DNA of 64,000 nucleotides, from IMG/VR virus record IMGVR_UViG_3300028275_000006, positions 1-64,000 of that record. One strand, written 5' to 3'. Made by a program: the position numbers and the translations under genes. The notes under the pieces are model-generated. The model saw only the letters and a program-made list of their open reading frames with translations, was not told the DNA's origin and made no database searches. Positions 33,297-50,594 of this stretch are shown piece by piece. The number at the start of each line of letters is the position of its first letter. Position 1 is the first letter of the stretch.

Positions 33297-33581
33297 TTAA
33301 TTATTTAGATACTTTAAATGTGAACACGCCAGTAAAAAGAAACTGGCTTCTTTTGGCTCTTCAAAACCAACTTTAATTTTGGTTTGATATTGATTATTTT
33401 CTAACACTAAACACTCGCCAATATAAAATCGGTGTTTAAGATTTTCGTAAATCCAATCCTTAACGGATGCTACAATATTATATTTTAGATCCAAATAGTA
33501 GTAATGGAAATAGGGAGGCGGATCCTGCACCTCCCTACAGCCTAACACATTAAGTGGATTTATTTTAGCATTATTTGCCAT
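33297..33581 (-). CDS. hypothetical protein
   Basis: 94 aa, start overlaps the upstream stop codon. Confidence 0.6.
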   Translation of the reverse strand: MANNAKINPLNVLGCREVQDPPPYFHYYYLDLKYNIVASVKDWIYENLKHRFYIGECLVLENNQYQTKIKVGFEEPKEASFFLLACSHLKYLNN

Positions 33582-34759: not shown

Positions 34760-34789
34760 TTATGCTCCGTTTCTTTACTGTATGTTTAT

Positions 34790-34818
34790 ATTATACAGTC
34801 ACTTCTATACTTTGTCAA
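34790..34818 (-). promoter_or_regulatory. sigma70-type promoter
   Basis: TTGACA-N17-TATAAT, perfect consensus. Confidence 0.85.
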
Positions 34819-34821
34819 GGT

Positions 34822-34845
34822 TAGAGGTGCATCTCTGCACCTCTA
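34822..34845. terminator. 10-bp hairpin downstream of the AAA ATPase gene
   Basis: TAGAGGTGCA/TGCACCTCTA stem; loop reads GAGA (GNRA) on minus; the T-tract follows only on the plus strand. Confidence 0.45.
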
Positions 34846-34851
34846 TTTTGG

Positions 34852-35952
34852 TTATCGCTTGTCCTGAGCGGCCGCGATGTACTTACCAAACTTTTCGTGG
34901 AACTCATCGAAACACTCGATTTCGTCTGGATCTAACGGAAGTTGATATTGGGTAAGTGCAAGTTTGGTGCCCATAACAACCAATTCAGTTTCAAAATTAT
35001 CCATCATAAAACGGAAGAAGTTATTAACCTTCTCGTCAAATTTCTTGTCTTGCTTTTCGGTTGCATCTTTCAACTCGTAGCACATAGACACAGTCAAAGA
35101 ATACATAGCAGAAATTTCAATTTTGGAATCTAATTTCTTAACTTTACCGGCCAAAATATCTTCTGGCTTAGGCAGTTTGCTAGACACTTTTCGGTGTGCC
35201 ATAAACTTAAGAGCAAGACCTTCACCCACTGCACCGGAAATCAAATCCATCAGCGTTTCATCGTTTGTGTCATCTTCCTCTAAAAGCTCAGAAACGAAAC
35301 TCCAAGAACGGGGTGTTGCAAATGCACGGCTTGAAGACTTAGGATCGAAGTCGTACAAGTCTTTCTTGGCAAAAGTAACGTAGCCGACAACATCTTTGTG
35401 TACACGGTTGTTAGTAGCCCACAAAGACCAGTCATCAAAGTCTACACGCATTTCCAAGTGAACGAAACGATTAGCCAACGGTGCTGGCATACGATATGTA
35501 ACACCTTTGTCTGCTTCGCGGTTACCAGCCGCAACAATCAAAACGTTATCTGGCAGTTTGTACTGTCCCACACGACGGTTCAAAATAAGTTGATAAGCGG
35601 CGGCTTGTACGCTAGGAGCCGCAGAGTTCATTTCGTCCAAGAACAAAATTACATTAGGGAATTTAGATGCAAGTTCTTCGGTGGGTAGTTCGCTTGGGCT
35701 ACCCCAAACCATAGTGCCTGAATTGGTATCAAAATATGGAATACCTTTGATATCTGTAGGTTCCCAAAGGCTTAGGCGAATGTCAATGACATGGGCACCC
35801 ATCTCTGCACCAATTTGGTGAATAATATCGGATTTACCAATGCCCGGAGGACCCCAAAGGAACAACGGACGCTGTTTCTTAAATGCCTTACGAATAGCGT
35901 TCTTTGCACCGTTCGGGCTAACTTGACGATTGACTACTTCTGCTTTTGCCAT
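34852..35952 (-). CDS. MoxR-like AAA+ ATPase
   Basis: Walker A GPPGIGKS, Walker B LFLDEMN, AAGNR, PLANRF; start moved to MAKAE after AGGAG. Confidence 0.88.
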   Translation of the reverse strand: MAKAEVVNRQVSPNGAKNAIRKAFKKQRPLFLWGPPGIGKSDIIHQIGAEMGAHVIDIRLSLWEPTDIKGIPYFDTNSGTMVWGSPSELPTEELASKFPNVILFLDEMNSAAPSVQAAAYQLILNRRVGQYKLPDNVLIVAAGNREADKGVTYRMPAPLANRFVHLEMRVDFDDWSLWATNNRVHKDVVGYVTFAKKDLYDFDPKSSSRAFATPRSWSFVSELLEEDDTNDETLMDLISGAVGEGLALKFMAHRKVSSKLPKPEDILAGKVKKLDSKIEISAMYSLTVSMCYELKDATEKQDKKFDEKVNNFFRFMMDNFETELVVMGTKLALTQYQLPLDPDEIECFDEFHEKFGKYIAAAQDKR

Positions 35953-36001
35953 TACATGCTCCTGTGTTAAAAATGATTGCAATTAATTTCGCAGTATCAT
36001 T

Positions 36002-38503: not shown

Positions 38504-38952
38504 GAAACCTCAGACTTGCCTTCGGCAATCTTTTTAACATTAATAAATCCAGCACCTCTATCTGACATATCGATGCCCTCTTCGCTGGCTACATTTTTGC
38601 ATAGTTCTCTAAACCAACGATCCACAATTTCTTCATCAGGATCGCCATCAAATCCATAACCCGCTTGTTTTAATTGTACTACAAATTCATCGTTCCAGTC
38701 AATCTCGAAGAAACCATTCTTTAAGTTATCTTTATTGACATGTGTCTCCAAAACAGCGACCCAAGGTTCTCCTTTGGCTGTAGCACGGTCTTTTGGAGTC
38801 ATTTTAGCCAATTCTTCTTCGCGTTTGGCTACTGCTTCTTTGGCTGTTGCTTCTTCAGCACGGGCAAGTGCTTCTGCACGTTCTTTTTCTAGACGTTCTT
38901 TTTCTGCTTCTAATTTGTCTATGCCAAATAATTTTTTAATAATTGCTTTCAT
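38500..38952 (-). CDS. hypothetical protein with an N-terminal coiled coil
   Basis: Start moved to MKAIIKK after GGGGGA; acidic C-terminal domain. Confidence 0.65.
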   Translation of the reverse strand: MKAIIKKLFGIDKLEAEKERLEKERAEALARAEEATAKEAVAKREEELAKMTPKDRATAKGEPWVAVLETHVNKDNLKNGFFEIDWNDEFVVQLKQAGYGFDGDPDEEIVDRWFRELCKNVASEEGIDMSDRGAGFINVKKIAEGKSEVS

Positions 38953-39619
38953 GTTTCCCCCATACCCGCGATTGCGGATAAAAAAATGCGTTTTCGTTTT
39001 GCCCCATATCCCAAATAATACTGCCCATTGTATTTCTTTCATTTAGTGGCAACGATTGAATAAAAGTATTTGTACTATAACGAACACCTTTAGTTATTGG
39101 TTTAACTTCGTGTACCCAAAGAGGATCTGCTGGAAAAATCATAGCATCTCCTTTATTCAATTTAACTTCGTATCTGCCATTCCAAAAAGTAAATTCGCCA
39201 CCTTCATAGTCGTCATTTAATGAAATAGTACAACTGGCGTGAATCATTTCCTCCCAATCCACATGAGGATGTATCCATTCGCCGACTTCGTATTTCATAA
39301 GTCGGTGCATGTGGGAAAATCTTAAAGATTTTTTTAATGCTGTAGTGTGAAACGCTTTAAACTCTTCTAGATATGTTATCCAATCTTCGATAATTTTATT
39401 TGTATGATTATGTACTACTAAAAAGTTTTCTGTATCAGGAATTAACTCTACTCTTTTAAAAGTAGAAGTAGTCATTTTATTAGTTACGGCGTGTATGCAA
39501 CTTTCTTGAACCGCACTGGCAGAACGCAATTCGTATTCGTCAATTAACGAATTGCATTGGTCTTCTGTTAATGCGTTTCTAACAACAAAAATTAAATCGG
39601 ATAACTTTATATCTTCCAT
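38936..39619 (-). CDS. 2OG-Fe(II) oxygenase (prolyl-4-hydroxylase-like)
   Basis: HxD (HPHVD), LNDDYEGGEF, distal H (WVHEVKP) and R (GVRYS). Confidence 0.88.
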   Translation of the reverse strand: MEDIKLSDLIFVVRNALTEDQCNSLIDEYELRSASAVQESCIHAVTNKMTTSTFKRVELIPDTENFLVVHNHTNKIIEDWITYLEEFKAFHTTALKKSLRFSHMHRLMKYEVGEWIHPHVDWEEMIHASCTISLNDDYEGGEFTFWNGRYEVKLNKGDAMIFPADPLWVHEVKPITKGVRYSTNTFIQSLPLNERNTMGSIIWDMGQNENAFFYPQSRVWGKHESNY

Positions 39620-40483
39620 TTATGTTCCCCACTCATTTTTAAAGAGTGGAACTTGTAATCTATCGCTGTAGCGTAAACCGTTTTTCATTGCTAGTTCCGC
39701 TACACGCCTGTTGTTAAGAGTATAGACACTTTCAACGCCACCCACGGGCATAAGATATATAGGACCGGTAAAACCATTTTCTCTATAAATGTCAGCAGTT
39801 TCAATTGCTTCCTCCGCATCTTCTTCTGTGGCCACTACAAATTTAAGATATGTATGACCGTATTCTTCGTATTCACAAACTACGTCTGGACGAATTGCTT
39901 CGTGACGTTCTTCACCGGAGCAACTTAATTTAGCACTAACACTAAATGTAACTTCTCGCCAAAAATCTTTATCGCTGTGATATTTCCATGTGTGCAGATA
40001 TTGCTTGAACTCGTCGGTGAGTTTTTGAGTACCATTCGTTTCAAATGTAATCTCTTTTAAGTTTGTCATTTTTGGATGGTCGAGCAAGTCTGGATACGCT
40101 CGTTGCCATCCAAGCAAAGGTTCCCCTCCGGTAATGACCAAGTGTTCGTCTCGCCATTCGTTGAAGGGTAGAATCTCTGCGATCCTGTCTGCGATGGCGT
40201 CTGAAGTGAGCATTGGACTAAGATCCTTAAAGCGAGGATCCCAACTAGCATAACTATCACAGCCCGTAGATACCAAAGGAAGTTCTTCATATTTTTTATA
40301 TGGGGTTCGTTCATGTTGGATTGCAATATCTTCAACTTCTGTACTTAGTTCACCTTTTGGTAATCCAAAGCCAGCACATTTAAAGTTACAACCAAATGTT
40401 CTCAAGAAAACAGACGGTACACCCATGTAACGTCCTTCGCCTTGAATACTATAAAATAATTCTGCAATTTTTAATTTGCTCAT
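39620..40483 (-). CDS. queE: 7-carboxy-7-deazaguanine synthase (radical SAM)
   Basis: ELFYSIQGEG, VFLRTFGCN, VITGGEP, ETNGT, RLQVPL; the Cys motif is split by an insertion. Confidence 0.9.
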   Translation of the reverse strand: MSKLKIAELFYSIQGEGRYMGVPSVFLRTFGCNFKCAGFGLPKGELSTEVEDIAIQHERTPYKKYEELPLVSTGCDSYASWDPRFKDLSPMLTSDAIADRIAEILPFNEWRDEHLVITGGEPLLGWQRAYPDLLDHPKMTNLKEITFETNGTQKLTDEFKQYLHTWKYHSDKDFWREVTFSVSAKLSCSGEERHEAIRPDVVCEYEEYGHTYLKFVVATEEDAEEAIETADIYRENGFTGPIYLMPVGGVESVYTLNNRRVAELAMKNGLRYSDRLQVPLFKNEWGT

Positions 40484-40944
40484 ATACAGTCACCTTGTTC
40501 TGCCAGTTTACTGGCGCTTGATTTTTCTTTACCTGCTTGTCTAAACAGTTTAACATCTTTAATTGCAGATTTCAATGTTTCGGCATAATTCAGTGCCTGT
40601 TGTTCAGTCATAGAAATAGTTGTTTCAACGGTCACTGCACCAGTTGTCCAAAGTTGCCAAGTTACTTTCAAACGAGTCCATAGCCCATTAATTAAATCTT
40701 TAACAAACCAATCAATCTCTTGTAGATACGGACTATCAATATCGTATCTTTTTTCAACTAGTTCAGACCAATAATCAGTTTTAGCAGTTGCGTAAATGTT
40801 TACATTAATACCAGTCTCACTAGATTCAACTTCTACATTGTGATCGTGATACTCTTGCCCGCAACCGCAGACAATTTGATAAAACTTAGTGTCGCCAAAG
40901 TCACTGCGTTTTAGAATTCCTTCTGCTGGTTGCTCTAATTTCAT
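40480..40944 (-). CDS. hypothetical protein
   Basis: 154 aa; CGC..H near the N-terminus. Confidence 0.65.
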   Translation of the reverse strand: MKLEQPAEGILKRSDFGDTKFYQIVCGCGQEYHDHNVEVESSETGINVNIYATAKTDYWSELVEKRYDIDSPYLQEIDWFVKDLINGLWTRLKVTWQLWTTGAVTVETTISMTEQQALNYAETLKSAIKDVKLFRQAGKEKSSASKLAEQGDCI

Positions 40945-41261
40945 TGTTTGAACATCTCTAAGTTAATAATTTTAGCAACACGCTCGCCAATATCTTCTCC
41001 GTTAGGAATCACATAAGTTTGACTTTCGTGTCTATCTTTACGGTCATCGTAGTGTCTTACATTTAAAATTTTACCACCGACGGCGGTGCTTAATTCGAAA
41101 GTGATTCGTCCTTCACCTTCTGCACGACCGCGTTCTATTGCTTGTGCTGTTCCGATTGCCAATTTATACTCTCTTTCTTTCATAGTTGCTTCTTCGTACT
41201 TGTGTCGATTATCCCACATATCGCGGACTTTTCCATACAACCATTTATCGACAAAATTCAT
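40941..41261 (-). CDS. hypothetical protein
   Basis: Start at MNFVDK gives an ATGA overlap with the upstream gene. Confidence 0.6.
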   Translation of the reverse strand: MNFVDKWLYGKVRDMWDNRHKYEEATMKEREYKLAIGTAQAIERGRAEGEGRITFELSTAVGGKILNVRHYDDRKDRHESQTYVIPNGEDIGERVAKIINLEMFKQ

Positions 41262-41473
41262 TTGCATGTCTCCAACCATTTATCAAGAATATTTACAGCA
41301 TCATTGAAATCGATACCATATACTTCTGCACTGATAACATTGTCTTTGATTTGTATATCAAACGGAACAGTTCCGTTAAATCGAAAATCTTCGGGAACAT
41401 CTGTCTCTACAATATACTTGTGTAGATTTTTTGCTCTATTAATTAAATTAGTCGCCATGTCTACTGAATTCAT
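41258..41473 (-). CDS. hypothetical protein
   Basis: 71 aa, overlaps the folE stop codon. Confidence 0.55.
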   Translation of the reverse strand: MNSVDMATNLINRAKNLHKYIVETDVPEDFRFNGTVPFDIQIKDNVISAEVYGIDFNDAVNILDKWLETCK

Positions 41474-42168
41474 CTTGGTGCAAACTCCTGTTGTAGTTTA
41501 ATGTTATCAAAGAACTCTTTCTTTGTACCAGCATCGTCTTTGAACGCACCTTTAAGTACAGTAGTTTGAGTTAATGAACTATGTGCCATAATGCCACGAT
41601 TCTCACAGCATCCATGAACTGCCTGAATATAAACGCCAATATCACTTGCGCCAGTGGCCTTTTCAATTTCTCTGGCTATGTCGTTACACAATTCTTCCTG
41701 TAAGGTACCACGACGAGCGCACCATTGCGCGATTCGTGTGTATTTTGACAGCCCAATGAGTTTTTGGGCGGCGATGATTCCGATGTAGGCAACACCAGAA
41801 ACAGGCTGATGATGATGACTACACATACTACGAAGCTCACTCCTAACCACCAACATACCCTCATAACGATCTTCGCTATCGTTAGGAAACGCTGTTGCAT
41901 CTGGTGCTGGTTCATATCTTCCTGCCATTATTTCGTTAAAGTACATTTTTGCTAATCGTTTCGCTGTACCGTGCGAGTTAGGATCTGTCTCTCTGTCAAT
42001 AAGAAGTTTGTCTAAAACACTTTCAAATGCCTCAGTTGCTTCTTTGATTAGTTGTTCTTTGACTAGATCAGATTCGATGTATTCGCTGATGTTATCTCCT
42101 GCCCAGAATCTTTTTCCGTCTAGGACCATCTTTTCGCGAATCGCTTGTGCTAAATTTTTTTCTGACAT
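41470..42168 (-). CDS. folE: GTP cyclohydrolase I
   Basis: SMCSHH, GLSKYTRI, QEELC, HGCCENRGI. Confidence 0.95.
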   Translation of the reverse strand: MSEKNLAQAIREKMVLDGKRFWAGDNISEYIESDLVKEQLIKEATEAFESVLDKLLIDRETDPNSHGTAKRLAKMYFNEIMAGRYEPAPDATAFPNDSEDRYEGMLVVRSELRSMCSHHHQPVSGVAYIGIIAAQKLIGLSKYTRIAQWCARRGTLQEELCNDIAREIEKATGASDIGVYIQAVHGCCENRGIMAHSSLTQTTVLKGAFKDDAGTKKEFFDNIKLQQEFAPR

Positions 42169-42182
42169 TATTTCTCCGAGTT

Positions 42183-42200
42183 ATAGACGAGGATGTCTAT
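42183..42200 (-). promoter_or_regulatory. leader hairpin upstream of the folE SD
   Basis: ATAGAC-ATCCTC-GTCTAT between the -10 box and GGAG. Confidence 0.45.
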
Positions 42201-42205
42201 GTAAT

Positions 42206-42234
42206 ATAATATAGTTTATTTAGGTTTTTGTCAA
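42206..42234 (-). promoter_or_regulatory. sigma70-type promoter for the folE-queE operon
   Basis: TTGACA-N17-TATTAT. Confidence 0.75.
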
Positions 42235-42447
42235 CTAAGTGCGTATACTTTTCTTATCAATATGTTGTTGTTCATATCGTAATCTACGGCATTCTTCCCT
42301 GACTGTATTAGGGATATCAGGATGCCATTCTGCCATCCCGCAATCATAGATGCGAGTTTGACTACCGTAATCGGTAAAAATAAGAATAAGCACAGCCGCT
42401 ATTAAAGCGACTGCGGCTGTAATCTTTCCGATAATAGTATCCGACAT
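42235..42447 (-). CDS. small membrane-anchored protein
   Basis: N-terminal hydrophobic helix; two Cys (DCG...ECR). Confidence 0.6.
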   Translation of the reverse strand: MSDTIIGKITAAVALIAAVLILIFTDYGSQTRIYDCGMAEWHPDIPNTVREECRRLRYEQQHIDKKSIRT

Positions 42448-42635
42448 AAGTCAGCATCCTTTTTTGATTTGAATGTAAATTTCATGTAGTCGTGTTGTGG
42501 ATGACTTTCGTATCTTCCGCCAGGTAGGCCAAATACTTCGAGCACCATGGCGCAAGTTTCATTCCACCAAAAACCTGATTGCCCGTCCCAATGGACGTAG
42601 ATATTATTCTGATCTTCCACTGGTGCAACTATCAT
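42402..42635 (-). CDS. hypothetical protein
   Basis: 77-aa ORF. Confidence 0.55.
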   Translation of the reverse strand: MIVAPVEDQNNIYVHWDGQSGFWWNETCAMVLEVFGLPGGRYESHPQHDYMKFTFKSKKDADLCRILLSERLQPQSL

Positions 42636-42804
42636 TCCAAAGTTCTTGTGCTCTGCGCTTATAGTCTTCTAATTCCCACACGGCTAATTTTTCACGAAAT
42701 ACTTCTTCGCTTAATCCGTGCCAGCCGATACAGTCTCCTGTAGGACTACGACCACAACCGCAAGTTCCAATTTTCTTTCCTTCTTCAGGTACTCTTACTT
42801 GCAT
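42604..42804 (-). CDS. CDGSH-like Fe-S/zinc-finger protein
   Basis: CGCGRSPTGDCIGWH resembles C-x-C-x2-S-x5-C-D-G-S-H; likely start MQVRV. Confidence 0.55.
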   Translation of the reverse strand: MQVRVPEEGKKIGTCGCGRSPTGDCIGWHGLSEEVFREKLAVWELEDYKRRAQELWNDSCTSGRSE

Positions 42805-43168
42805 TTTTATAATTTCCTTTACTTGGTATAACGTGACGAACCCCGCCACGAGGGTCTTCCATATCACCCTTGCGTCTAGGGATCATGTGTATATGAGGAT
42901 ACATTACTGTTTGGCCAGCAGTCTCGCCACAGTTTTGTCCGACATTAAAAGCGTCCCAACGTTCAGATTGGACACCATCGAACCCGAACTTGTATGCTCC
43001 TTTGAAACATTCGACGATGTTGGTAAAACGTTCATAGGTTGGCACAAAAAGCAAATGTCCTTCCGTAACTGGGTAGGCATCGTTGAAGACCCAATAGTCT
43101 TTTGTTCTGTACTCGATACTAGTCCATGGTGCTCTGCGTTCATCTAGTGCCCTTTCTAAATCAGTCAT
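42785..43168 (-). CDS. HIT-family nucleotide hydrolase
   Basis: DAYPVTEGHLLFVP; GETAGQTVMYPHIHMIPRR.GD. Confidence 0.88.
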   Translation of the reverse strand: MTDLERALDERRAPWTSIEYRTKDYWVFNDAYPVTEGHLLFVPTYERFTNIVECFKGAYKFGFDGVQSERWDAFNVGQNCGETAGQTVMYPHIHMIPRRKGDMEDPRGGVRHVIPSKGNYKNASKST

Positions 43169-43716
43169 AACCAAAATTCTTCCCAAGGATAAACAAGCCA
43201 ACAATCTTCTTGTCGCTTGTCTACGGTCCAAACATGATAGTCTGGATCTTTAAACTCACTGCCGTAATTATGTGTTAATACAGCAAAACGAACATTGTCT
43301 CCCCATACTTGATTCCATGCTTCATCGTTAGGAAAACAACCACTGGGCCAATCTTTCTTAATCCAATTAAGAGTAGATCCTTGATCGTTAATATCGTCTA
43401 CAATTAAGATTTTCTTTTTAAGACGTTCTAAATGTTTGTGATCGCCCCAAATGTGCCTTTCGTCATTGGGAACAACTCCCAAGGCATCTTCGGCCATCCA
43501 AAGATTACTTTCGCAATCGTTTTTATTATCGCGAAGGCTGACATTAAGTGTGTGCATCTTAATGCCAGTATATTGACTTAGTAAGTTAGCCGGAACAAGA
43601 CCACCGCGTGTAATACCTACAATATAGTCAGGCCTCCAATTATGTTCAGACATTTGGCGAGCAATTTCTAAACATGCGCCTTCAACTTGTGACCAACTGT
43701 AGTATACTTTCTTCAT
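43165..43716 (-). CDS. type I phosphoribosyltransferase (purine/Gpt-like)
   Basis: IVGITRGGLVPA, PRPP-binding ILIVDDINDQGST, WLVYPWE. Confidence 0.88.
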   Translation of the reverse strand: MKKVYYSWSQVEGACLEIARQMSEHNWRPDYIVGITRGGLVPANLLSQYTGIKMHTLNVSLRDNKNDCESNLWMAEDALGVVPNDERHIWGDHKHLERLKKKILIVDDINDQGSTLNWIKKDWPSGCFPNDEAWNQVWGDNVRFAVLTHNYGSEFKDPDYHVWTVDKRQEDCWLVYPWEEFWL

Positions 43717-43949
43717 GCAGTTAACCCATAGGCCAATGATTGACATTCTTCTTTAGTCATAAAGAAATTATAAGTTTGTGTACCAACAACTTCACCGTCT
43801 TTAAGACTTTCTTGAACCATATCGATACTAAACAAACCTTTAGGGCTTAGTACTTCGTGTTTCTTTAATGTTAGCCTAAAACCGGCGTGTTCTTTGACAA
43901 CCATTTCTTTATAAGTATCTCTAACTGATTCATGTAGTTCCATCATCAT
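43713..43949 (-). CDS. hypothetical protein
   Basis: 78 aa, coupled to the PRTase start. Confidence 0.55.
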   Translation of the reverse strand: MMMELHESVRDTYKEMVVKEHAGFRLTLKKHEVLSPKGLFSIDMVQESLKDGEVVGTQTYNFFMTKEECQSLAYGLTA

Positions 43950-44382
43950 CTCCTTTAATTGCGTCCCACGTTCTATATTTGGCTAATGCCTTAATATAGT
44001 CATCATACATCTTTTTTAACTTTGGATGCTTCTTTTCTAGTTTAACATCTCGCTCGGGAATTTGCAAGACTTTTTCAATTGTGTTTAACCTTTCTTCTAG
44101 GTCAACACCATTTAATACCATTCGACCTTTAACTTCTAACTCCGGTGGATCGTTTTTGGCAACCATCACCGGATTGGTAGTAGGATTAGCCCAAGTTACA
44201 TTTGTACCTGTAGTATAAGTTAACGGCACAGATGTAGTGCCGGCTCCGGTTGAAATCGTATATCCACTGCCAGAGCCGCCTGTGCCGTTCGATACTAAAA
44301 CACTACCTGAACCGGCACCGGAACCTGCTATGCCGCCGGCTGTATTAAGTATTACGCTTCCGTGATTGTAAGTATAGCTCAT
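43930..44382 (-). CDS. hypothetical protein with a Gly/Thr-rich N-terminus and a helical C-terminus
   Basis: 150-aa ORF. Confidence 0.6.
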   Translation of the reverse strand: MSYTYNHGSVILNTAGGIAGSGAGSGSVLVSNGTGGSGSGYTISTGAGTTSVPLTYTTGTNVTWANPTTNPVMVAKNDPPELEVKGRMVLNGVDLEERLNTIEKVLQIPERDVKLEKKHPKLKKMYDDYIKALAKYRTWDAIKGDDDGTT

Positions 44383-44800
44383 TTGGTATCCATTTATTAT
44401 TAACGAGAAATCCCCATTCTCTCTTTTGCGGACCTGGCATAAAAAGTGTCCAACACTCTACGTTGGGATCAATTTCAATTCTATGAAAACTGTTGGCACT
44501 ACAAATTCTAAAGTGTCCAGGCTTTCTCCATTTGGCAATTTCACAGACCTTTACTCCCTGGCTGTTAAATTGAGGAATCCATTCCCAATAGCCACCTTTT
44601 AGAATAAGTGTGGCATAAGGCCATGGGTGATCATGCACATCATCTGGATCACCTTTATGAAACTTGTGTAAGAATACATTAAATGGAAACCATTTACGAT
44701 CCTTTAAAAATAGATAATAACGTGTAAGTAACGGCTCGTCACAGGTACGATCCATAATAATACGCTTGCGACCGAGACGTTCTAACAGTTTTAATATCAT
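44345..44800 (-). CDS. cupin-fold protein
   Basis: HDHPWP...LKGGYWE and distal FHRIE: the H-x-H...E...H metal site. Confidence 0.75.
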   Translation of the reverse strand: MILKLLERLGRKRIIMDRTCDEPLLTRYYLFLKDRKWFPFNVFLHKFHKGDPDDVHDHPWPYATLILKGGYWEWIPQFNSQGVKVCEIAKWRKPGHFRICSANSFHRIEIDPNVECWTLFMPGPQKREWGFLVNNKWIPNELYLQSRKRNT

Positions 44801-45870
44801 ACAAGTCTTTCTAAGAGTCCATTTGCAGAAAAGAAATTTTCAGTTAAGTCTTGAGTTTGTTTTCTAAGTTGTGGTAAAAACTTTTCATAGTTATCCATAT
44901 ACTGGATAATCTTTGCACATATTTCTGGACGGTGTGCTTTATATGCTTCGAAACTTTCAGTCCATTCACTAGGATACTTAAAAGTATCATAGCCCATTTC
45001 ACTGTAACTAAGTCTATCTGGCACCATAGGAATAGCATCTACAACAGCGCCTTCATACCAACTAATCCCTAATGTCTCTTGTAAGTTTGCAGAGAACACT
45101 AATTTCGATTCGCCTAACAAGTTATGATATTCATTTTTTGTTAGTTGTTGATCCTGACAGACTACGAACTCGTACTGTGGCAAGTGTTCTTTTAAATCTC
45201 TAAAAATTTCAACTTGCTTCTCGGGTGCGATGCGATGAGGGAAAAGAATTAAATCACGTTTTTTCATCCCTTTATATGGAGTTAATGTATCTTCCATATA
45301 CTCCATTGGCCAACCTGTGCGTACAATTTTTCCTTTATCGATATATGATGCTTTTGCAGTATCGTAATCTATGTTTAAAAGATTATGACAAAACATTTCA
45401 ATATGGAATGTTGTAGCAAAGTAGTTATGATCTATAGCATGAAAGAAACTCTTTTCAGCATTTCTGACCCAAGGAGCATCGCCAATTAGACGACCTAAAA
45501 AGTCCTGTGGATCGTAACTACCGGCATGCCATAGTGCGTGAATAGTTACAGGAATCTGTAACAGTTCACTCATATACTTTAGGTTGATGATACCAGGGTG
45601 CCAAGCATCAGTAAAGATGAAGTGATCATTAGGAGCCACTGATCCGGCGCAAAACAACCTACCCATTTGCTCAACTTGAGCAGACTTGTATATATTGGTG
45701 CCACCAAAATTAAGAAAAGCACCAGGAGTAGTGGCTGAAGGAATATCCGTAGGCCCAGATAAAACTTGAACATCGTGTCCTCTCTTTCTCAGGATAGCCG
45801 GTAGGTGGGTCTTCCACTGCGCTGTATAGCGTGTTTCTACCGGCTCAAGGTCTACTAAGTAGACGGTCAT
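44797..45870 (-). CDS. GT-B glycosyltransferase (GT4-like)
   Basis: LFPHRIAPEK; EX7E motif ETLGISWYE; IPMVPDRLSYSE. Confidence 0.82.
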   Translation of the reverse strand: MTVYLVDLEPVETRYTAQWKTHLPAILRKRGHDVQVLSGPTDIPSATTPGAFLNFGGTNIYKSAQVEQMGRLFCAGSVAPNDHFIFTDAWHPGIINLKYMSELLQIPVTIHALWHAGSYDPQDFLGRLIGDAPWVRNAEKSFFHAIDHNYFATTFHIEMFCHNLLNIDYDTAKASYIDKGKIVRTGWPMEYMEDTLTPYKGMKKRDLILFPHRIAPEKQVEIFRDLKEHLPQYEFVVCQDQQLTKNEYHNLLGESKLVFSANLQETLGISWYEGAVVDAIPMVPDRLSYSEMGYDTFKYPSEWTESFEAYKAHRPEICAKIIQYMDNYEKFLPQLRKQTQDLTENFFSANGLLERLV

Positions 45871-46100
45871 TGGCGACCATTCCTGTAGTTGTTATTGTAC
45901 CCGTTGTTATTACGGGGACGATTTTCAAATCGTCTGTCGTTGTTATAACGACGAGGACGCTTAGACGCCTCGTAAGCCTGCCAAGTTTTACTTTGGCGGT
46001 TATACAAGTCTGCCTCATTGTAAGGCAGAAGGTTGAATCTGCAAAAATCTAGCAGATTGTCAAGATCGTCAAAAATTTGAACGACTTCTTTTTTCATCAT
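45867..46100 (-). CDS. small protein with an Arg/Asn-rich tail
   Basis: C-terminal RPRRYNNDRRFENRPRNNNGYNNNYRNGRQ. Confidence 0.6.
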   Translation of the reverse strand: MMKKEVVQIFDDLDNLLDFCRFNLLPYNEADLYNRQSKTWQAYEASKRPRRYNNDRRFENRPRNNNGYNNNYRNGRQ

Positions 46101-46108
46101 TGTTTCCT

Positions 46109-46504
46109 TTAGTATTTGATGAATGAACCATTTTCTCCGTCTTCGGAGACCTCAATCCAAATCTCGCGATTTGGATACTTCTTGCTAATGATGTCATGTA
46201 ATTCGTCAGACATCATTTCACAACTCTTGTAGTCAAGGCTTATAGTGGCACCTTGACCATTATACAACGACTCGAGCCATCGTTTGAATTGGATGAATTC
46301 GATGTCCCTGTCATTGTGTTGCACACTGATCCACACCCTGAAATGAAAGATGTGGCGATGAGGGTGACCCAAAAACGATACGTCATATTCGTCTCCTGTT
46401 GCTAGATTAGGATCTGTTAGTGCCGCAGGATACTTATGGATACCTTCTTTGCGGAAAGTTACCCAGATCATTTTGTTTGGTCTAATGTCTTGTTTGATAA
46501 TCAT
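46109..46504 (-). CDS. dpdL: QueD-paralogous T-fold protein, DpdL-like
   Basis: LGHPHRHIF (LxxxHRHxF in place of QueD CxxxHGH), SCEMMS, VSEDGENG; start at MIIKQ (ATGA overlap). Confidence 0.65.
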   Translation of the reverse strand: MIIKQDIRPNKMIWVTFRKEGIHKYPAALTDPNLATGDEYDVSFLGHPHRHIFHFRVWISVQHNDRDIEFIQFKRWLESLYNGQGATISLDYKSCEMMSDELHDIISKKYPNREIWIEVSEDGENGSFIKY

Positions 46505-47040
46505 GTTGGTGTATCTTGAGTGTACAAATCCCAATGAGTATACTTGTCTTTAGTCATTAGGCTTTGTAAATGATGTGTCCACACACCTGGATTTGTAGCA
46601 CCCCAAGTTCGGTCATCCAGTTTGAGTGTGGCATTGTAGTTGAGTTGATTAATGTAGGGTAACTTGACACTAATCATAGGTACAAACTTGGGATATTCGT
46701 TATAAGCAGACTCTAGTACGCCTTCGATGTGTTCAACACCAAAGTCTAGAGCTACCCAATAGCCTGCTTTTAGACAGCCTATAATAACTTCGTCCCATGC
46801 TTTGTATTCTTCGTGTGAAATACTTTTAGGATTAAAACTTTGACTAGTGCCAAAGTAAATTTGTTTAATGCGTTTGTTTTCGTCTAAGTATGCTTGTGTG
46901 TCACCAGCAATACGTAGTATTTCTTCTAGCGGAGGAGTGCCTACTACAAATAGTGTATACATACCATAGCAAATAGTATGTTCGACTTCGTAGCCTGTAA
47001 AGTAGACAATGTCTTGTCTTTCTTCAGTGTTTAATCCCAT
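46501..47040 (-). CDS. uncharacterised alpha/beta protein inside the deazaguanine cluster
   Basis: 179 aa; TLFVVG, IYFG, LKLDD...ATNPGVW; no family recognised. Confidence 0.7.
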   Translation of the reverse strand: MGLNTEERQDIVYFTGYEVEHTICYGMYTLFVVGTPPLEEILRIAGDTQAYLDENKRIKQIYFGTSQSFNPKSISHEEYKAWDEVIIGCLKAGYWVALDFGVEHIEGVLESAYNEYPKFVPMISVKLPYINQLNYNATLKLDDRTWGATNPGVWTHHLQSLMTKDKYTHWDLYTQDTPT

Positions 47041-47921
47041 TTAATATAACCTCTGCTATAACCATTTGGACGATCCACACCATCCGCAAATGCTTGTTGC
47101 CATTCTGTGTTACGATTATAACCTTTTGTCCAGAAAGAATCAACCTCTAGTTTACCGTTTTCAATCATCCAACGTGCTTCAAACATAGCACCAATAAATT
47201 CTTCTGTTCTTGGACTTGGTTTAACTGTAGTAACAGCCTTCCAAAGTTGTTGTTGTGCTTCTTCTTTACTTACTGCTTTACCAACAGCATCAATGATTAC
47301 TGCATTGTTATTTAGATTAATGTCGGTACCTAGTTGATATTTTCCAGATAAATCTACTATCAAATCGTAACTGTCGGTAGTACCTAACAGTAACGCATCT
47401 CCCCAAAGTTCCTGATTACTAGAACCTAGTACATCTACTTCAAGTTCTGGAAAATGATGTGCCAGGTTATTAAAAACTACCCATGCAAGGAAACCACTAC
47501 CTAGGATTAAGCATTTACCATTTTGTCTACGTTCAAAAAGAGTATACGCTTGTCTAATACAGTTAACACCACAGGCCACTGGTTCTAAAATGTAACGTGG
47601 ATGTAGTTCTAAAACTGTTACAAACTCACCGTCACGACAGTTGTAATAATCTGCGTATGCTGGTTCGCCGCGGGTAGCAACATAATCGCCTACTTTAACA
47701 CCTAATACACTGGCACCGACTTTAGTTACGATTCCTAGACCTTCGTGACCTTGCATGTGTAGTGGTAAAGGTCCAAAGTTGCCCTGCATCATATCTATGT
47801 CACTGCGACATACACCAGTCATAACTGCTTTAACTTCAATTTCAGTTGACGTAGGTTCTGGCTTTGCATATTCTACTTCTTCAAAGTAACCTTGTCCAGT
47901 TGTTTGTAGACAGCGTGTCAT
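47031..47921 (-). CDS. zinc-dependent medium-chain dehydrogenase (MDR)
   Basis: GVCRSD, GHEGLG, EPVACG, LILGSG; structural-zinc Cys lobe absent. Confidence 0.88.
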   Translation of the reverse strand: MTRCLQTTGQGYFEEVEYAKPEPTSTEIEVKAVMTGVCRSDIDMMQGNFGPLPLHMQGHEGLGIVTKVGASVLGVKVGDYVATRGEPAYADYYNCRDGEFVTVLELHPRYILEPVACGVNCIRQAYTLFERRQNGKCLILGSGFLAWVVFNNLAHHFPELEVDVLGSSNQELWGDALLLGTTDSYDLIVDLSGKYQLGTDINLNNNAVIIDAVGKAVSKEEAQQQLWKAVTTVKPSPRTEEFIGAMFEARWMIENGKLEVDSFWTKGYNRNTEWQQAFADGVDRPNGYSRGYIKWD

Positions 47922-48796
47922 AGTTTTTCTATTCTTTCGTGTATCCAAAGGTCAATTTCTAACTGTACTTTCCAGTACTCGTCATTATTTAGGTTTTCTA
48001 CAGCATCTTTAATCATATTTAGGTACGCTTCTTCTGGACACCAGCCTAACTCAAATACATCTTTGGTATTATCTTGATTAATAAATGTAATAGCACTACG
48101 TTCAACAGTCATACTGCGCCAGTTAGCACGGCAGTTCCATTTAGAACCAAATCCAATGTGACACTGGTCGTCTACATCATAAGTTCCATTTGGGTTTACA
48201 GTACCATACTCTGTGCTTTCGATATCTTTTAACAGCCATGATTGTATAGATGATTCGCCGTTAACTTTTTCTATGCGCCAGTCTGGATGTAGTGCAATAT
48301 ACAAACTTAATAAGTGTGGCATTAAGTCCCTACTAACTCCGCCAAATGCTAGTTTGCGTGTAGTAAACCAACTACCTGGGCTAGGAATACAGTTCTTTCT
48401 AATCCATTCGATGTCTACATTCTTTGCTACTTTAGCCTTTTCCTGTAATTCTGCAATATTGTCACGCCACATATTATTTTTAACCATCATAAATCGTGTG
48501 CGTGGAAATCTTTTACATAATTTAGCCCATTCGTTTCTATTAATCAGTCCAGGCTTTTCAATAAAGACAATTTTACTGATAGGAGCCAGTTTAACGGCTA
48601 ATTCTAAATGCGTAAAATTTGGTGTGCAAATATGTACGGTGTCAAAAGACCCGTGAAGTAATATGGCTGGTTCTATACTAGGGAAGTCGGCATTTTTATT
48701 AATGTCTGTATCGACAGTACAAACTTCATAACCTAATTGAGTTAGGACAGATTTATATAACTGTCCTATTCCCATTCCTACAACTAAACTTTTCAT
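47918..48796 (-). CDS. Gfo/Idh/MocA-family oxidoreductase
   Basis: VVGMGIG, ICTPNFTH, FIEKPG, GGVSRDLMPH. Confidence 0.85.
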   Translation of the reverse strand: MKSLVVGMGIGQLYKSVLTQLGYEVCTVDTDINKNADFPSIEPAILLHGSFDTVHICTPNFTHLELAVKLAPISKIVFIEKPGLINRNEWAKLCKRFPRTRFMMVKNNMWRDNIAELQEKAKVAKNVDIEWIRKNCIPSPGSWFTTRKLAFGGVSRDLMPHLLSLYIALHPDWRIEKVNGESSIQSWLLKDIESTEYGTVNPNGTYDVDDQCHIGFGSKWNCRANWRSMTVERSAITFINQDNTKDVFELGWCPEEAYLNMIKDAVENLNNDEYWKVQLEIDLWIHERIEKL

Positions 48797-49050
48797 CTAT
48801 ATGTTGGTAGTTCGTTAACACATTTAATAAGAGATCCGGATTGTTTGCCCGCTAATTGATGTAGCGCATAATCCGGAGAGGATACACAGGCTTCGTGCCC
48901 ATTGAATTTATCTGCTAGGGCAATGGTGTTGCCAGTTTCTGCAAATTTAATTACAAGATAGTAGTCGTTTGGACCCACGGCATCTGCCGTTTTATAAAAC
49001 AAACCAAAACTTAATACTGCTAAAACACCAATGCCTAGTAGTTTTTTCAT
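48793..49050 (-). CDS. small exported protein
   Basis: Signal peptide MKKLLGIGVLAVLSFG..ADA; two Cys. Confidence 0.6.
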   Translation of the reverse strand: MKKLLGIGVLAVLSFGLFYKTADAVGPNDYYLVIKFAETGNTIALADKFNGHEACVSSPDYALHQLAGKQSGSLIKCVNELPTYR

Positions 49051-50594
49051 TTTACGCCTTCTTCGAGTTCGTCAAGTTTAGCAATTTCATCATCGGTAAA
49101 TTCTTCACCGTGCTCTAATTGTACACTCTCTTCCTCTACTTCGTCAAACAGTTTGGCAAATTGTGTACTTGCGTTTACAGTCTTCTTACCTACTGCTCCG
49201 CGAGTTCCAATAATACTTTGCCAAAATTTATTATACTCTTCAACGACTTTGTCTGCTTCTGCACGACTACTAGTAGCAAAAATGGCTTCTACTACATCTT
49301 TAAAGAATAGTCTATCAAACCGTTCTTCTACTAACATAGCAGGAACAATGCCCAAATCGTATTGACGATTGGCTTCTTGTACAGCATTAATGTGCATCCA
49401 AACATTATGGCCCATTAAGATAGCGTAACTAAAACTATCCCACGAAGTTTTACCTTCCTTGCCAATCTTGTTTAGATCCCCGGGCCCGTAAATACAAACA
49501 TCTTTAATTTGAACCCCGTCAATAATTGGACTATTGTCAAAGTTTTTAAAATGTCCGTCCTGTACTACTGCATCGCGGAATAGTCTAGTATCTTTACTAT
49601 ATTTTTTATTATCGATACTAGGTAACATTCTATATACCCACTTAGTTCTGTCTTGTGTTTCTGTTTGAACGTATACTTGTCCGTTTGCAGTTGCTAAGAA
49701 TGGACTAGCACAGTCGAAACTAATTGTAAAGTTAGGATTGTGATACTTGCGTACAGCACGTTGAATGTCTGTTAATAAACAAGCCCACTCTAATTTACTA
49801 GTACCTAAGAAGTGCATCCAGTCTTGTTTGCCCTGTTCAAGTAATCCGTCAAATCGTAATGCTACTAGGCGTTTTAATACCAAGTGTACATCACACATAT
49901 TCTGACCACCCATGGCCCAACCGTTAAATGCACGGTCACCGTAGACAGTAGGATCGCAGTACTTCTTCATTCGGTCATACCAATCGTCTGCATCGGTATG
50001 ATTTTCACCTTGGAGAACGTTTAAGAATTTACAATTACCATTGCGATTGTTTACAAACCAATCGTTGTTAATGTAAGTACCTTGAACTGCTTCTGCGTAT
50101 GTAGTAATGCCTGTGGCTTTTTGTCCAGCAGGGCTACGAGCTACCCAAGCAGGGATATCAAGACACATACCATAGTCCATTAGACTATCCATCCACTTAA
50201 GAACCTGTTCACGTTTCTTTTGTGCTTTAGGACAGTTGGGATTCTTCCAATCGCCTTCCCATACACCTTTACCAATTTGGAAACCACCGGAGTCGCCTAG
50301 TACCCAACTAGTACTGCGATCTCTATTACGAAACATATCTTCGCTGTGATCAACTTTGTTAAGGTCTAGATTAGCATGACCTGCACTATACAAGCAGTGG
50401 TCATAGTAGAACGCACCTTTTTCCGGTTCTAAGTAGTTTAGACTTTCTACTCCGTTTTTAAAACTAGCAGGAACTCTTGCCGGATCAACATAGTTTCCAT
50501 ATCTTTGTTTACCTATAAAGGTACTATAGAAACCGCTAGTTGCCGGCAAAAAGTATGCGTAGTCGTTTTGTGTTGCGGTTAAATTTTTATTCAT
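49047..50594 (-). CDS. dpdA: TGT-fold guanine transglycosylase, DpdA-like (7-deazaguanine insertion)
   Basis: TGT barrel motifs in order: LGDSGGFQ, CLDIP, NVLQG, WAMGG, MHFLG, SFDCASP; no CxCxxC zinc site of tRNA TGTs. Confidence 0.82.
   Translation of the reverse strand: MNKNLTATQNDYAYFLPATSGFYSTFIGKQRYGNYVDPARVPASFKNGVESLNYLEPEKGAFYYDHCLYSAGHANLDLNKVDHSEDMFRNRDRSTSWVLGDSGGFQIGKGVWEGDWKNPNCPKAQKKREQVLKWMDSLMDYGMCLDIPAWVARSPAGQKATGITTYAEAVQGTYINNDWFVNNRNGNCKFLNVLQGENHTDADDWYDRMKKYCDPTVYGDRAFNGWAMGGQNMCDVHLVLKRLVALRFDGLLEQGKQDWMHFLGTSKLEWACLLTDIQRAVRKYHNPNFTISFDCASPFLATANGQVYVQTETQDRTKWVYRMLPSIDNKKYSKDTRLFRDAVVQDGHFKNFDNSPIIDGVQIKDVCIYGPGDLNKIGKEGKTSWDSFSYAILMGHNVWMHINAVQEANRQYDLGIVPAMLVEERFDRLFFKDVVEAIFATSSRAEADKVVEEYNKFWQSIIGTRGAVGKKTVNASTQFAKLFDEVEEESVQLEHGEEFTDDEIAKLDELEEGVK

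Follow-up and report, generated by a model that had tools for sequence, protein, structure and literature searches.

A 7-deazaguanine DNA-modification gene cluster with a predicted glycosyltransferase in a giant uncultured phage

Results

Gene content of the cluster

We analyzed a 64,000-nucleotide stretch of a giant uncultured phage (IMG/VR record IMGVR_UViG_3300028275_000006, positions 1 to 64,000; hereafter the window), and focused on positions 38936-50594, where the minus strand carries a set of genes related to 7-deazaguanine metabolism, glycosyl transfer and redox chemistry:

49047-50594 (-), DpdA-like DNA-guanine transglycosylase of the TGT superfamily (515 aa), with a C-terminal extension of about 200 aa
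47918-48796 (-), Gfo/Idh/MocA NAD(P) oxidoreductase (GFO)
47031-47948 (-), Zn-type medium-chain dehydrogenase/reductase (MDR)
46501-47040 (-), p179, conserved core protein of unknown function
46109-46534 (-), DpdL, a QueD/PTPS paralogue and the proposed 7-carboxy-7-deazaguanine decarboxylase
45867-46100 (-), p77, small protein with a basic Arg/Asn-rich tail
44797-45870 (-), predicted GT4-type GT-B glycosyltransferase (GT)
44345-44800 (-), cupin-like metalloprotein
43930-44382 (-), p150, function unknown
43165-43746 (-), purine (6-oxopurine-type) phosphoribosyltransferase (PRTase)
42785-43231 (-), HIT-family nucleotide hydrolase/transferase
42206-42234 (-), promoter-like site ahead of folE
41470-42168 (-), FolE, GTP cyclohydrolase I
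40480-41279 (-), p112 and p154, two small unknown proteins translationally coupled between FolE and QueE
39620-40483 (-), QueE-like radical-SAM 7-carboxy-7-deazaguanine synthase with a split Fe-S motif
38936-39619 (-), 2OG-Fe(II) oxygenase

The original prediction, made from sequence alone, named eleven functions here (FolE, QueE, a QueD paralogue, a TGT-fold DpdA-like protein, a GT-B glycosyltransferase, an MDR, a Gfo/Idh/MocA oxidoreductase, a cupin, a PRTase, a HIT protein and a 2OG oxygenase), and this observation holds: we find all eleven on the minus strand, at or inside the positions it gave. The coupling of many genes through overlapping start and stop codons is also borne out, with 4-nt overlaps at DpdA/p85, p85/GFO, p77/GT, GT/cupin, FolE/p71, p112/p154 and p154/QueE, and a 0-nt gap at QueE/2OG. 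The real start of DpdL is probably the ATG at residue 11, which would give a 4-nt overlap with p179, and the probable start of the HIT protein is Met22, which would give an ATGA overlap with the PRTase stop. The two promoters that had been proposed, at 51948-51920 and 42234-42206, are two of the three best sigma-70-like matches on this strand, all three at 11 of 12 positions, and both lie in intergenic gaps; the latter reads TTGACA-17-TATTAT in the 66-nt gap upstream of FolE. Because promoter-like sites are no more numerous in total than in shuffled sequence, these consensus matches are consistent with promoters but do not prove them.

FolE matches Pfam GTP_cyclohydroI (1.4e-38) and is 53-59% identical to FolE of Vibrio phage 2.275.O and of Phosso. 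The five best NCBIfam hits of the QueE-like protein are all QueE models, but fall below their cut-offs, and the match is split at residues 37/75: the Fe-S motif reads C32-x3-C36, followed by a 38-aa insert and then C75 and DSYAS. This protein is 30% identical over its full length to QueE of PA5oct and of a Vibrio phage. The QueD paralogue is a DpdL homologue: it carries the DpdL signature LxxxHRHxF (as LGHPHRHIF), belongs to phrog_17812, and matches DpdL of Acidovorax phage ACP17 (4.9e-40, 57% identity) and of Cellulophaga phage phiST (1e-13, 34% identity). We found no canonical QueD anywhere in the 64-kb window. The DpdA-like protein is missed by plain Pfam and PDB HMM searches, yet an alignment of 53 family members shows an invariant DSGGFQ motif (D101-S-G-G, in GDSGGFQI), D146, an HFLG motif (H261..G264) and D294. 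Profile-profile comparison with hhalign gives probabilities of 92.3% to E. coli Tgt, 96.4% to ACP17 ASD50403, which we take to be the DpdA of that phage, and 95.4% to the TGT annotated in phage BUDD.

The AlphaFold2 model of the GT (pLDDT 83.7) has as its top Foldseek hits in the PDB retaining GT4/GT5 enzymes, including glycogen synthase, BshA and MshA, at probability 1.0, and matches the ACP17 GT at TM 0.85-0.89. The GT catalytic motifs are invariant, the invariant residues including E265-x7-E273, R213 and K218, and homologues of the protein give weak Pfam Glycos_transf_1 hits. Of the oxidoreductases, the MDR matches Pfam ADH_N (5e-12) and PDB alcohol, threonine and iditol dehydrogenases through its N-terminal domain only, and possesses the catalytic-Zn motifs GVCRSD and GHEGLG. 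The GFO scores 25.8 bits (1.9e-5) against a Pfam GFO_IDH_MocA cut-off of 24, possesses GxGxxG and EKP motifs, and has as its best PDB hit DgpA, a C-glycoside 3-oxidase (7xr9, 2.6e-7). The 2OG oxygenase matches Pfam 2OG-FeII_Oxy_3 (1.9e-11) and has an HxD...H triad. The cupin assignment is supported only by PHROG 4786 ‘cysteine dioxygenase’ (4.6e-35) and an HxH...H pattern, with no Pfam hit.

The PRTase matches Pfam Pribosyltran (2.2e-13) and, in the PDB, the purine PRT 1vdm (1e-11), HGPRT and XGPRT, with homologues in the phiST group, BUCT-ZZ01 and PA5oct; the HIT protein matches Pfam HIT (1.1e-7). The remaining proteins resist assignment. p179 has 27 invariant residues and homologues in the PA5oct group and in ACP17, but its AlphaFold2 model (pLDDT 84.4) has no structural neighbor in the PDB (best E 0.06). 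p77 has a pI of 9.7; p150 has a Gly/Ser/Thr-rich N-terminus followed by a helical C-terminus and partially matches PA5oct EST35_0319; and p112 and p154 gave no family hits.

Conservation of the glycosyltransferase alongside DpdA and DpdL

The original prediction had named co-occurrence with dpdA/dpdL in related genomes as a test, and for the GT the outcome is clearly positive. Across 80 related viral contigs from IMG/VR, the core order DpdA-p179-DpdL-p77-GT-PRTase-FolE-QueE is invariant: the GT is present in 52 of 52 and in 41 of 41 informative loci, p179 in 68 of 68 loci that hold both DpdA and DpdL, p77 in 55 of 80 loci, and the nearly core PRTase in 25 of 28. p112 and p154 are conserved in 9 and 17 related loci, respectively. 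Synteny within this set is partly phylogenetic inertia, as the DpdA proteins of these loci are 64-85% identical to that of the window. For the redox enzymes the outcome is only partly positive: the GFO occurs in 24 of 74 loci, always together with the MDR, the cupin occurs in 28 of 41, the HIT protein and p150 each in 19 of 41, and the window's own 2OG oxygenase in only one other locus, although other 2OG oxygenases occupy the cluster in seven relatives. These enzymes are therefore lineage-specific accessories, not core. The variable slots of the cluster in relatives hold textbook sugar-tailoring enzymes: a DegT aminotransferase, a UDP-Glc/GDP-Man dehydrogenase, an SDR epimerase/4,6-dehydratase and a B12-radical SAM enzyme, as well as a class-III aminotransferase and 2OG oxygenases.

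The association recurs outside this group despite shuffled gene order. The same GT lies within 3 kb of DpdL in six separate cultured phage lineages (Pseudomonas phage PA5oct and its group, ACP17, Phosso, BUDD/X1, BUCT-ZZ01 and BCSR5). Of 23 GenBank phage records with the GT, 18 also hold DpdL within 3 kb, where independence would predict about 0.01 such records among 50,697. In five bacterial loci, four of them on large chromosomal contigs, the GT lies within about 1.7 kb of a DpdA-like gene. In contrast, no homologue of this GT was detected in phiST, RHph_I1_18, Ahp1 or several other DpdL-bearing phages.

Discussion

The region is a 7-deazaguanine DNA-modification cassette of the DpdA/DpdL type that also carries a putative glycosylation arm. 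We propose that FolE, a QueD encoded outside the window or supplied by the host, and QueE convert GTP to 7-carboxy-7-deazaguanine (CDG), and that DpdL removes the carboxyl group to give 7-deazaguanine, a step proposed by Cui et al. 2023 (PMC10516641) that has never been reconstituted. The 515-aa TGT-superfamily enzyme would then exchange guanine in newly replicated phage DNA for the deazaguanine base, and the GT would transfer a sugar from an NDP-sugar onto the deazaguanine, acting either on the free base before insertion or on the base already in DNA. Lineage-specific enzymes (GFO and MDR, the cupin and the 2OG oxygenase in the window) would re-tailor the sugar, so that related phages carry different sugars, and the PRTase most likely recycles the guanine released by base exchange into GMP and then GTP, which feeds FolE. 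The identities of the genes, their order and their co-occurrence rest on our sequence and structure comparisons, and the CDG pathway on established knowledge; base exchange is inferred from family membership, glycosyl transfer from strict and repeated synteny, and sugar tailoring and guanine recycling are likewise inferences.

A glycosylated 7-deazaguanine in DNA is the best-supported reading of these data, though we hold it with only moderate confidence, as it is inferred from sequence alone and no chemical data exist for any phage that carries this cassette. The literature provides a precedent for a glycosyltransferase acting on a 7-deazaguanine base, HuiG of the huimycin pathway (PMC7439116), but we found no paper describing a glycosylated 7-deazaguanine in DNA. 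Cui et al. could not obtain 2'-deoxy-7-deazaguanosine (dDG) from the ACP17 dpdA and dpdL genes alone and suggested that other enzymes may be needed; the ACP17 locus contains the GT and p179 homologues that they left out. Other considerations weigh against this reading. 7-Deazaguanine offers no hydroxyl group, leaving the acceptor atom unclear, while GT4 enzymes are retaining O- or N-glycosyltransferases and no GT4 C-glycosyltransferase is known. The GT's nearest structural neighbors act on small molecules or glucans: T4-type DNA glucosyltransferases are absent from the PDB top 50, and a cyanophage DNA alpha-GT ranks only 33rd in BFVD. DpdL works without this GT in phiST, which has proven plain dDG. 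In addition, we identified no NDP-sugar pyrophosphorylase in the window. Our favored attachment point, which is speculative, is C7, since DpdL frees that position and the TGT pocket tolerates substituents there.

The interpretation in the original prediction, that the phage may make a new hypermodified guanine, such as a reduced or hydroxylated 7-deazaguanine carrying a sugar, with a likely role in protection against restriction enzymes and CRISPR, is partly supported. The sugar-tailoring enzymes in relatives fit a sugar-bearing base better than a reduced or hydroxylated one. Protection from restriction is a reasonable inference, as PA5oct DNA, made by a homologous cassette, resists several G-containing restriction sites and is sensed as carrying a modified G (PMC12191111). 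If our model is correct, the bulky modified G would block restriction enzymes and other DNA-targeting defenses.

A possible though less likely alternative is that the DNA carries only plain dDG, and that the GT and sugar enzymes glycosylate a phage or host protein, the cell envelope or another metabolite, and sit nearby for co-expression. phiST makes dDG with DpdA3, DpdL, FolE, QueD and QueE and without this GT, JGI names the GT homologues ‘glycosyltransferase involved in cell wall biosynthesis’, and the GT's structural neighbors are not DNA glycosyltransferases. The JGI name is, however, a generic COG label, and an unrelated function would have to explain the GT's presence in every informative related locus and its adjacency to DpdA or DpdL in six phage lineages with different gene orders and in five bacterial loci.

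We consider it unlikely that the pathway instead runs at the nucleotide level, with the PRTase turning 7-deazaguanine or CDG into a nucleotide, as TubE and ToyH do in tubercidin and toyocamycin biosynthesis, to be used by the phage polymerase as a modified dNTP or released as a possibly glycosylated deazapurine nucleoside that acts on the host. The recurrence of a purine-type PRTase fits this view, as does the location of the cluster beside the DNA polymerase, and tubercidin clusters combine the CDG genes with a PF00156 PRTase, a decarboxylase, a reductase and a nucleotide hydrolase, mirroring PRTase, DpdL, the oxidoreductases and HIT here. Yet the most conserved member of the cluster is a TGT-superfamily enzyme with an intact catalytic motif, which implies base exchange on a nucleic acid, known secondary-metabolite deazapurine clusters lack DpdA or TGT, and the PRTase is equally well explained as salvage of released guanine. 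Least likely is that FolE, the T-fold protein and the GT make a glycosylated pterin, akin to cyanobacterial tetrahydrobiopterin glucoside, separately from the DpdA/QueE branch: although FolE, a PTPS-like protein and reductases are the ingredients of pterin synthesis and the Synechococcus UDP-glucose:tetrahydrobiopterin glucosyltransferase (5zer) is among the GT's structural matches, its rank of 26 (E 2.5e-6) among generic GT4 hits is not specific, DpdL lacks the catalytic cysteine of PTPS and QueD, and the GT also pairs with a DpdA-like gene in bacterial cassettes where no FolE or DpdL homologue was detected nearby.

The cassette shares with the dDG system of phiST a FolE, a QueE, a DpdL with the LxxxHRHxF motif, a TGT-superfamily DNA transglycosylase and a purine PRTase in the genome, and both lack QueC. 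phiST, however, has no p179 or sugar-tailoring genes, its 259-aa DpdA3 is only marginally related to the 515-aa protein by profile comparison (68%), and it has a MazG and a P-loop kinase-like gene instead. PA5oct, ACP17, Phosso, BUDD/X1, BUCT-ZZ01 and BCSR5 share homologues of DpdA-like, GT, DpdL and QueE in one block, but lack the GFO-MDR pair, cupin, HIT and 2OG oxygenase of the window; PA5oct has an SDR fragment instead. In the literature we searched, the DNA chemistry of these phages has not been published.

The logic would be that of glucosyl-hydroxymethylcytosine in T-even phages, where a non-canonical base is further glycosylated by a GT-B enzyme to evade restriction and the sugar varies between relatives; there, however, the base is a pyrimidine made at the nucleotide level with a hydroxymethyl acceptor, and the GT described here belongs to the GT4-like group and is not close to the T4 enzymes. 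In huimycin/dapiramicin biosynthesis, a FolE/QueD/QueE-derived 7-deazaguanine is glycosylated on its 2-amino group by the clustered HuiG using an NDP-sugar, but the product is a free secondary metabolite of actinomycetes, made from preQ0 (itself made by QueC) with O-methylation and without TGT or DpdA. In the bacterial Dpd restriction-modification system, a TGT-family enzyme also inserts a 7-deazaguanine into DNA, with DpdA/DpdB inserting preQ0 that is then converted to ADG. We saw no DpdB, DpdC or DpdD-K homologues, the base is different and the GT is an added partner, while the bacterial versions of the present cassette lie in defense islands.

Gene content of the cluster

All genes between about 36 and 55 kb lie on the minus strand, and many neighboring genes overlap by 4 nt. 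The original prediction that this region carries a 7-deazaguanine DNA-modification cluster, in which many genes are coupled by overlapping start and stop codons, is borne out by our analysis. Its two proposed promoters, at 51920 and 42206, are among the three best sigma-70-like matches on this strand, and both fall in intergenic gaps. The genes discussed here are:

38936-39619, minus strand: 2OG-Fe(II) oxygenase
39620-40483, minus strand: QueE-like radical-SAM protein
41470-42168, minus strand: FolE, GTP cyclohydrolase I
42785-43231, minus strand: HIT protein
43165-43746, minus strand: purine-type phosphoribosyltransferase (PRTase)
44345-44800, minus strand: cupin-like protein
44797-45870, minus strand: predicted GT4-like GT-B glycosyltransferase (GT), 357 aa
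46109-46534, minus strand: DpdL, 141 aa
46501-47040, minus strand: p179, 179 aa
47031-47948, minus strand: Zn-type medium-chain dehydrogenase/reductase (MDR)
47918-48796, minus strand: Gfo/Idh/MocA oxidoreductase (GFO)
48793-49050, minus strand: 85-aa ORF
49047-50594, minus strand: DpdA-like protein of the TGT superfamily, 515 aa

Family searches support the FolE, PRTase, HIT, 2OG oxygenase, MDR (N-terminal domain only), GFO and QueE-like assignments. FolE scores 132.6 bits (1.4e-38) against a cut-off of 27 for Pfam PF01227. For the QueE-like protein, the five best NCBIfam hits are all QueE models, but at 40-50 bits against cut-offs of 200-300; its Fe-S cluster motif is split, with C32-x3-C36 followed by a 38-residue insert before the third Cys (C75, 'CDSYAS'), matching the two-piece hits to the QueE models, and its homolog in phage PA5oct is annotated as QueE. 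The cupin assignment rests only on PHROG 4786 and a His pattern. The 85-aa ORF, which has a signal-peptide-like N-terminus, is wedged between DpdA and GFO by 4-nt overlaps and is found in only 2 of 80 related loci. Pfam, NCBIfam, PHROG and PDB sequence searches gave nothing for the 515-aa, 357-aa, 179-aa, 154-aa, 150-aa and 112-aa proteins, and the first two of these were resolved only by family alignment, profile-profile comparison and structure prediction.

Three key proteins gave no family hit and required further analysis. The 141-aa protein is a DpdL: it carries 'LGHPHRHIF', which fits the LxxxHRHxF signature that Cui et al. 2023 (PMC10516641) use to separate DpdL from QueD, with its CxxxHGH motif, and it matches the named DpdL proteins of phages ACP17 (phmmer, 4.9e-40; 57% identity by tblastn) and phiST (1e-13; 34%). 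A phmmer search of all window ORFs with two phage QueD proteins found only this DpdL and no canonical QueD. As PA5oct reportedly keeps a PTPS gene elsewhere in its genome, QueD may lie outside the window or be supplied by the host.

The 515-aa protein belongs to a large, divergent family with 1000 representatives at E <= 0.001. In an alignment of 53 family members, D101-S102-G103-G104 is invariant and Q106 is conserved in at least 90%, reading 'GDSGGFQI' and aligning with the same motif of E. coli Tgt; D146, an 'HFLG' motif and D294 are also invariant. D294 ('SFDCASP') aligns with the 'FDC' catalytic Asp of E. coli Tgt, and with 'SYDST' in the ACP17 and BUDD proteins. Profile-profile comparison (hhalign) gives probabilities of 92.3% (E 5e-7) to E. 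coli Tgt, 96.4% to ACP17 ASD50403, which we take to be that phage's DpdA, and 95.4% to the annotated TGT of phage BUDD, but only 68% to phiST DpdA3. The family is too divergent for sequence-to-profile searches: hmmscan of the protein and of all 53 family members finds no TGT model (Pfam PF01702), and a profile search against the PDB finds nothing. A TIM-barrel fold and activity on DNA are inferences from family membership.

The 357-aa protein is predicted to adopt a two-Rossmann-domain GT-B fold of the GT4-like retaining clade. Its AF2 model (pLDDT 83.7, pTM 0.82) has 95 PDB matches with E <= 0.001, of which the 50 listed are all glycosyl- or sugar-transferases, led by glycogen synthase, BshA, MshA, PglA and TreT. 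An E265-x7-E273 motif ('QETLGISWYEG') and R213/K218 ('PHRIAPEKQ'), the expected basic residues for the NDP-sugar diphosphate, are invariant in 24 sequences. The window protein itself has no Pfam Glycos_transf_1 hit at E 0.01, while its homologs hit weakly, below the cut-off (ACP17 at 2.5e-4, PA5oct at 1.1e-3). An hhalign comparison of the GT family with E. coli WaaG was not significant (probability 0.6%), though the alignment has low diversity and the comparison is superseded by the fold search. We considered whether the GT could be a T4-type DNA glucosyltransferase and rejected this assignment, because its structural neighbors are GT4/GT5 enzymes. Isoelectric points gave no hint of DNA binding, as both DpdA and the GT are acidic and the values are therefore uninformative.

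p179 is invariably present between DpdA and DpdL, has 27 invariant residues, and has homologs in PA5oct and ACP17. It has no sequence family, and its confident model (pLDDT 84) has no structural neighbor in the PDB; direct comparison with the Phosso 'glycosylase' and the PA5oct SDR fragment showed no relation to either. It is probably an unrecognized enzyme of the pathway, although no specific function can be given to it on present evidence.

Conservation in related phages

A megablast search of the region against 50,697 phage records found nothing, and no close nucleotide relative exists among cultured phages. The block from DNA polymerase to RNase H is, however, syntenic with the jumbo phage PA5oct at 30-54% protein identity. 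The 515-aa and 357-aa proteins each return at least about 8,000 close clusters at the 90% level in metagenomes, from contigs of up to 384 kb (the window's own contig is 330 kb), indicating a very abundant clade of uncultured jumbo phages.

We mapped every window protein onto 80 related IMG/VR loci. The conserved order is as follows, with variable slots in brackets and with p77, p78, p150, p179, p180 and p244 as working names for proteins of the block:

POL - clamp-like p244 - DpdA - [GFO-MDR] - p179 - DpdL - p77 - GT - [cupin, p150, p78] - PRTase - [HIT] - FolE - ... - QueE - p180 - RNase H

Table. Occurrence of cluster genes in related IMG/VR loci (gene; present / informative loci; status)
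p179; 68 / 68; core
DpdL; 61 / 61; core
GT; 52 / 52 and 41 / 41; core
PRTase; 25 / 28; near-core
GFO+MDR (always together); 24 / 74; accessory
cupin; 28 / 41; accessory
HIT; 19 / 41; accessory
the window's 2OG oxygenase; 1 other locus; rare accessory

In relatives, the variable slots are filled by other enzymes: a DegT/EryC1 sugar aminotransferase, a UDP-glucose/GDP-mannose dehydrogenase, an NAD-dependent epimerase/4,6-dehydratase, a B12-binding radical-SAM enzyme and further radical-SAM enzymes, a class-III aminotransferase, other 2OG oxygenases and, in two loci, a tryptophan-halogenase-type flavoenzyme. This is the pattern expected if a sugar is attached and then diversified. The two flavin-dependent halogenase genes (relatives L045, 12704-14245, and L020, 6918-8138; Pfam 8e-99 and 4e-30) lie between DpdA or MDR and p179. 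As the electron-rich pyrrole ring of 7-deazaguanine would be a plausible substrate, halogenated deazaguanine in DNA is conceivable. GIY-YIG/NUMOD3 homing-endonuclease genes are inserted within the cluster in some relatives (L053, 12220-12903, and L019 and L071, in the p179-DpdL slot), and may drive the exchange of accessory genes.

The GT-DpdL and GT-DpdA pairings outside the clade

Among the 50,697 GenBank phage records, DpdL homologs occur in 28 and GT homologs in 23. Eighteen records have both, always within 3 kb, and represent six lineages: Phosso, the PA5oct group, ACP17, BUDD/X1, BUCT-ZZ01 and BCSR5. Gene order differs between these lineages, so the adjacency has been kept independently. 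DpdL occurs without this GT in the phiST group, which has proven plain 2'-deoxy-7-deazaguanosine (dDG), and in RHph_I1_18, Ahp1 and others. The GT therefore marks a subtype and is not needed for DpdL function. In Vibrio phage 2.275.O (locus L002, 9905-16931), a member of the same DpdA-like family sits with an amidoligase-like protein, QueF, a YhhQ-type transporter, QueC, an amidotransferase and FolE, and without the GT or DpdL; the family is therefore also used for preQ1-type modifications.

The GT also pairs with a DpdA-like gene in bacterial loci. In a Pelagibacterium sp. chromosome (locus L103, 8039-15403; also bacterial loci L099 and L100), a DpdA-like gene (424 aa), a 177-aa multi-pass membrane protein and the GT (50% identical to the window GT) are followed by a 668-aa AAA_15/AAA_21 ATPase, within a defense island that also holds SNIPE, AbiTii, CD-NTase plus patatin (CBASS) and a resolvase. 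This may be a restriction-modification-like system. The membrane protein is only marginally YhhQ-like (E 0.012). In an alphaproteobacterial MAG (locus L107, 5220-11153, on a 3.18-Mb chromosomal contig), an operon encodes PTPS/QueD, the GT, a 531-aa unknown protein, a DpdA-like protein, DpdL and a QueE-like radical-SAM protein, next to a resolvase and a 696-aa unknown; this is the phage cassette in a bacterium, complete with QueD.

A model for a proposed glycosylated 7-deazaguanine

The original prediction proposed that the phage may make a new hypermodified guanine, such as a reduced or hydroxylated 7-deazaguanine carrying a sugar; this interpretation is only partly supported by our data. Co-occurrence with dpdA/dpdL in related genomes, which had been set beforehand as a test, strongly supports the glycosyltransferase arm, while the redox enzymes prove to be accessories and the chemistry itself remains a matter of inference. 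That FolE, QueD and QueE make 7-carboxy-7-deazaguanine (CDG), and that TGT-family enzymes exchange guanine for a 7-deazaguanine base, follows from established pathway knowledge. Decarboxylation of CDG to 7-deazaguanine by DpdL is a proposal of earlier work (PMC10516641) that has never been reconstituted, even for phiST or ACP17. We infer that the GT would add a sugar to the deazaguanine, either before or after the base is inserted into DNA, and that GFO, MDR, the cupin and the 2OG oxygenase would re-tailor that sugar; the GFO is closest to the glycoside 3-oxidase DgpA. The PRTase is closest to 6-oxopurine PRTs, and most likely salvages the guanine released by exchange back to GMP and GTP.

A glycosyltransferase acting on a 7-deazaguanine base has a precedent in HuiG of the huimycin pathway. 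PA5oct DNA resists several G-containing restriction sites and is sensed as G-modified, but its chemistry is unreported. Against our model, which must stand without chemical data, 7-deazaguanine has no obvious O-acceptor for a sugar, the GT resembles small-molecule GT4 enzymes rather than T4 DNA glucosyltransferases, and neither an NDP-sugar pyrophosphorylase nor QueD was found in the window. The rival explanations are that the DNA carries plain dDG and the GT is unrelated to it, that the pathway runs at the nucleotide level through the PRTase in a tubercidin-like route, or, least persuasively, that the product is a pterin glycoside.

In its boldest form, which we put forward only tentatively, our model holds that a widespread cassette of a DpdA-like transglycosylase, a GT4 glycosyltransferase and usually DpdL writes a glycosylated 7-deazaguanine into DNA, which would be the first sugar-bearing purine analog in any genome. 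The sugar might be joined to the C7 position that DpdL frees, its identity would be diversified by swappable tailoring enzymes, and in some relatives a flavin-dependent halogenase may act as well. The same cassette in bacterial defense islands would then mark self DNA in a new restriction-modification-like system.

All 7-deazaguanine DNA modifications known so far carry small substituents, and all glycosylated DNA bases known so far are pyrimidines. A sugar-bearing deazaguanine would add a new chemical class of genome modification. Literature searches found no description of a glycosylated deazaguanine in DNA or of the link between GT and DpdL, although these covered only open-access papers and bioRxiv preprints and a description elsewhere cannot be excluded. 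Our model may explain why Cui et al. failed to obtain dDG from the ACP17 dpdA and dpdL genes alone, since the GT and p179 homologs in the ACP17 locus were not included in that experiment. It also gives a concrete chemical hypothesis for the unidentified 'modified G' of PA5oct, a candidate for phage therapy, and bears on how modification-sensing defenses recognize such DNA. Because six cultured phage lineages carry the cassette, the question is open to direct test. Enzymes that attach sugars to a purine analog in or for DNA would be useful for labeling DNA.

Other genes in the window

On the plus strand, a single ORF of 4694 aa (9907-23991) lies among genes encoding proteins of 1143, 811, 770, 647 and 615 aa, which are probably structural. 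A DUF2201 metallopeptidase/vWA-like protein sits next to a MoxR-type AAA ATPase (33581-35982). At 30786-32106, a canonical thymidylate synthase gene (Pfam 2.5e-108) overlaps a DHFR gene, suggesting ordinary dTMP supply rather than a modified thymine. The N-terminus of a 581-aa protein (61432-63177) matches NT5C deoxyribonucleotidase, and this protein may shape the nucleotide pool.
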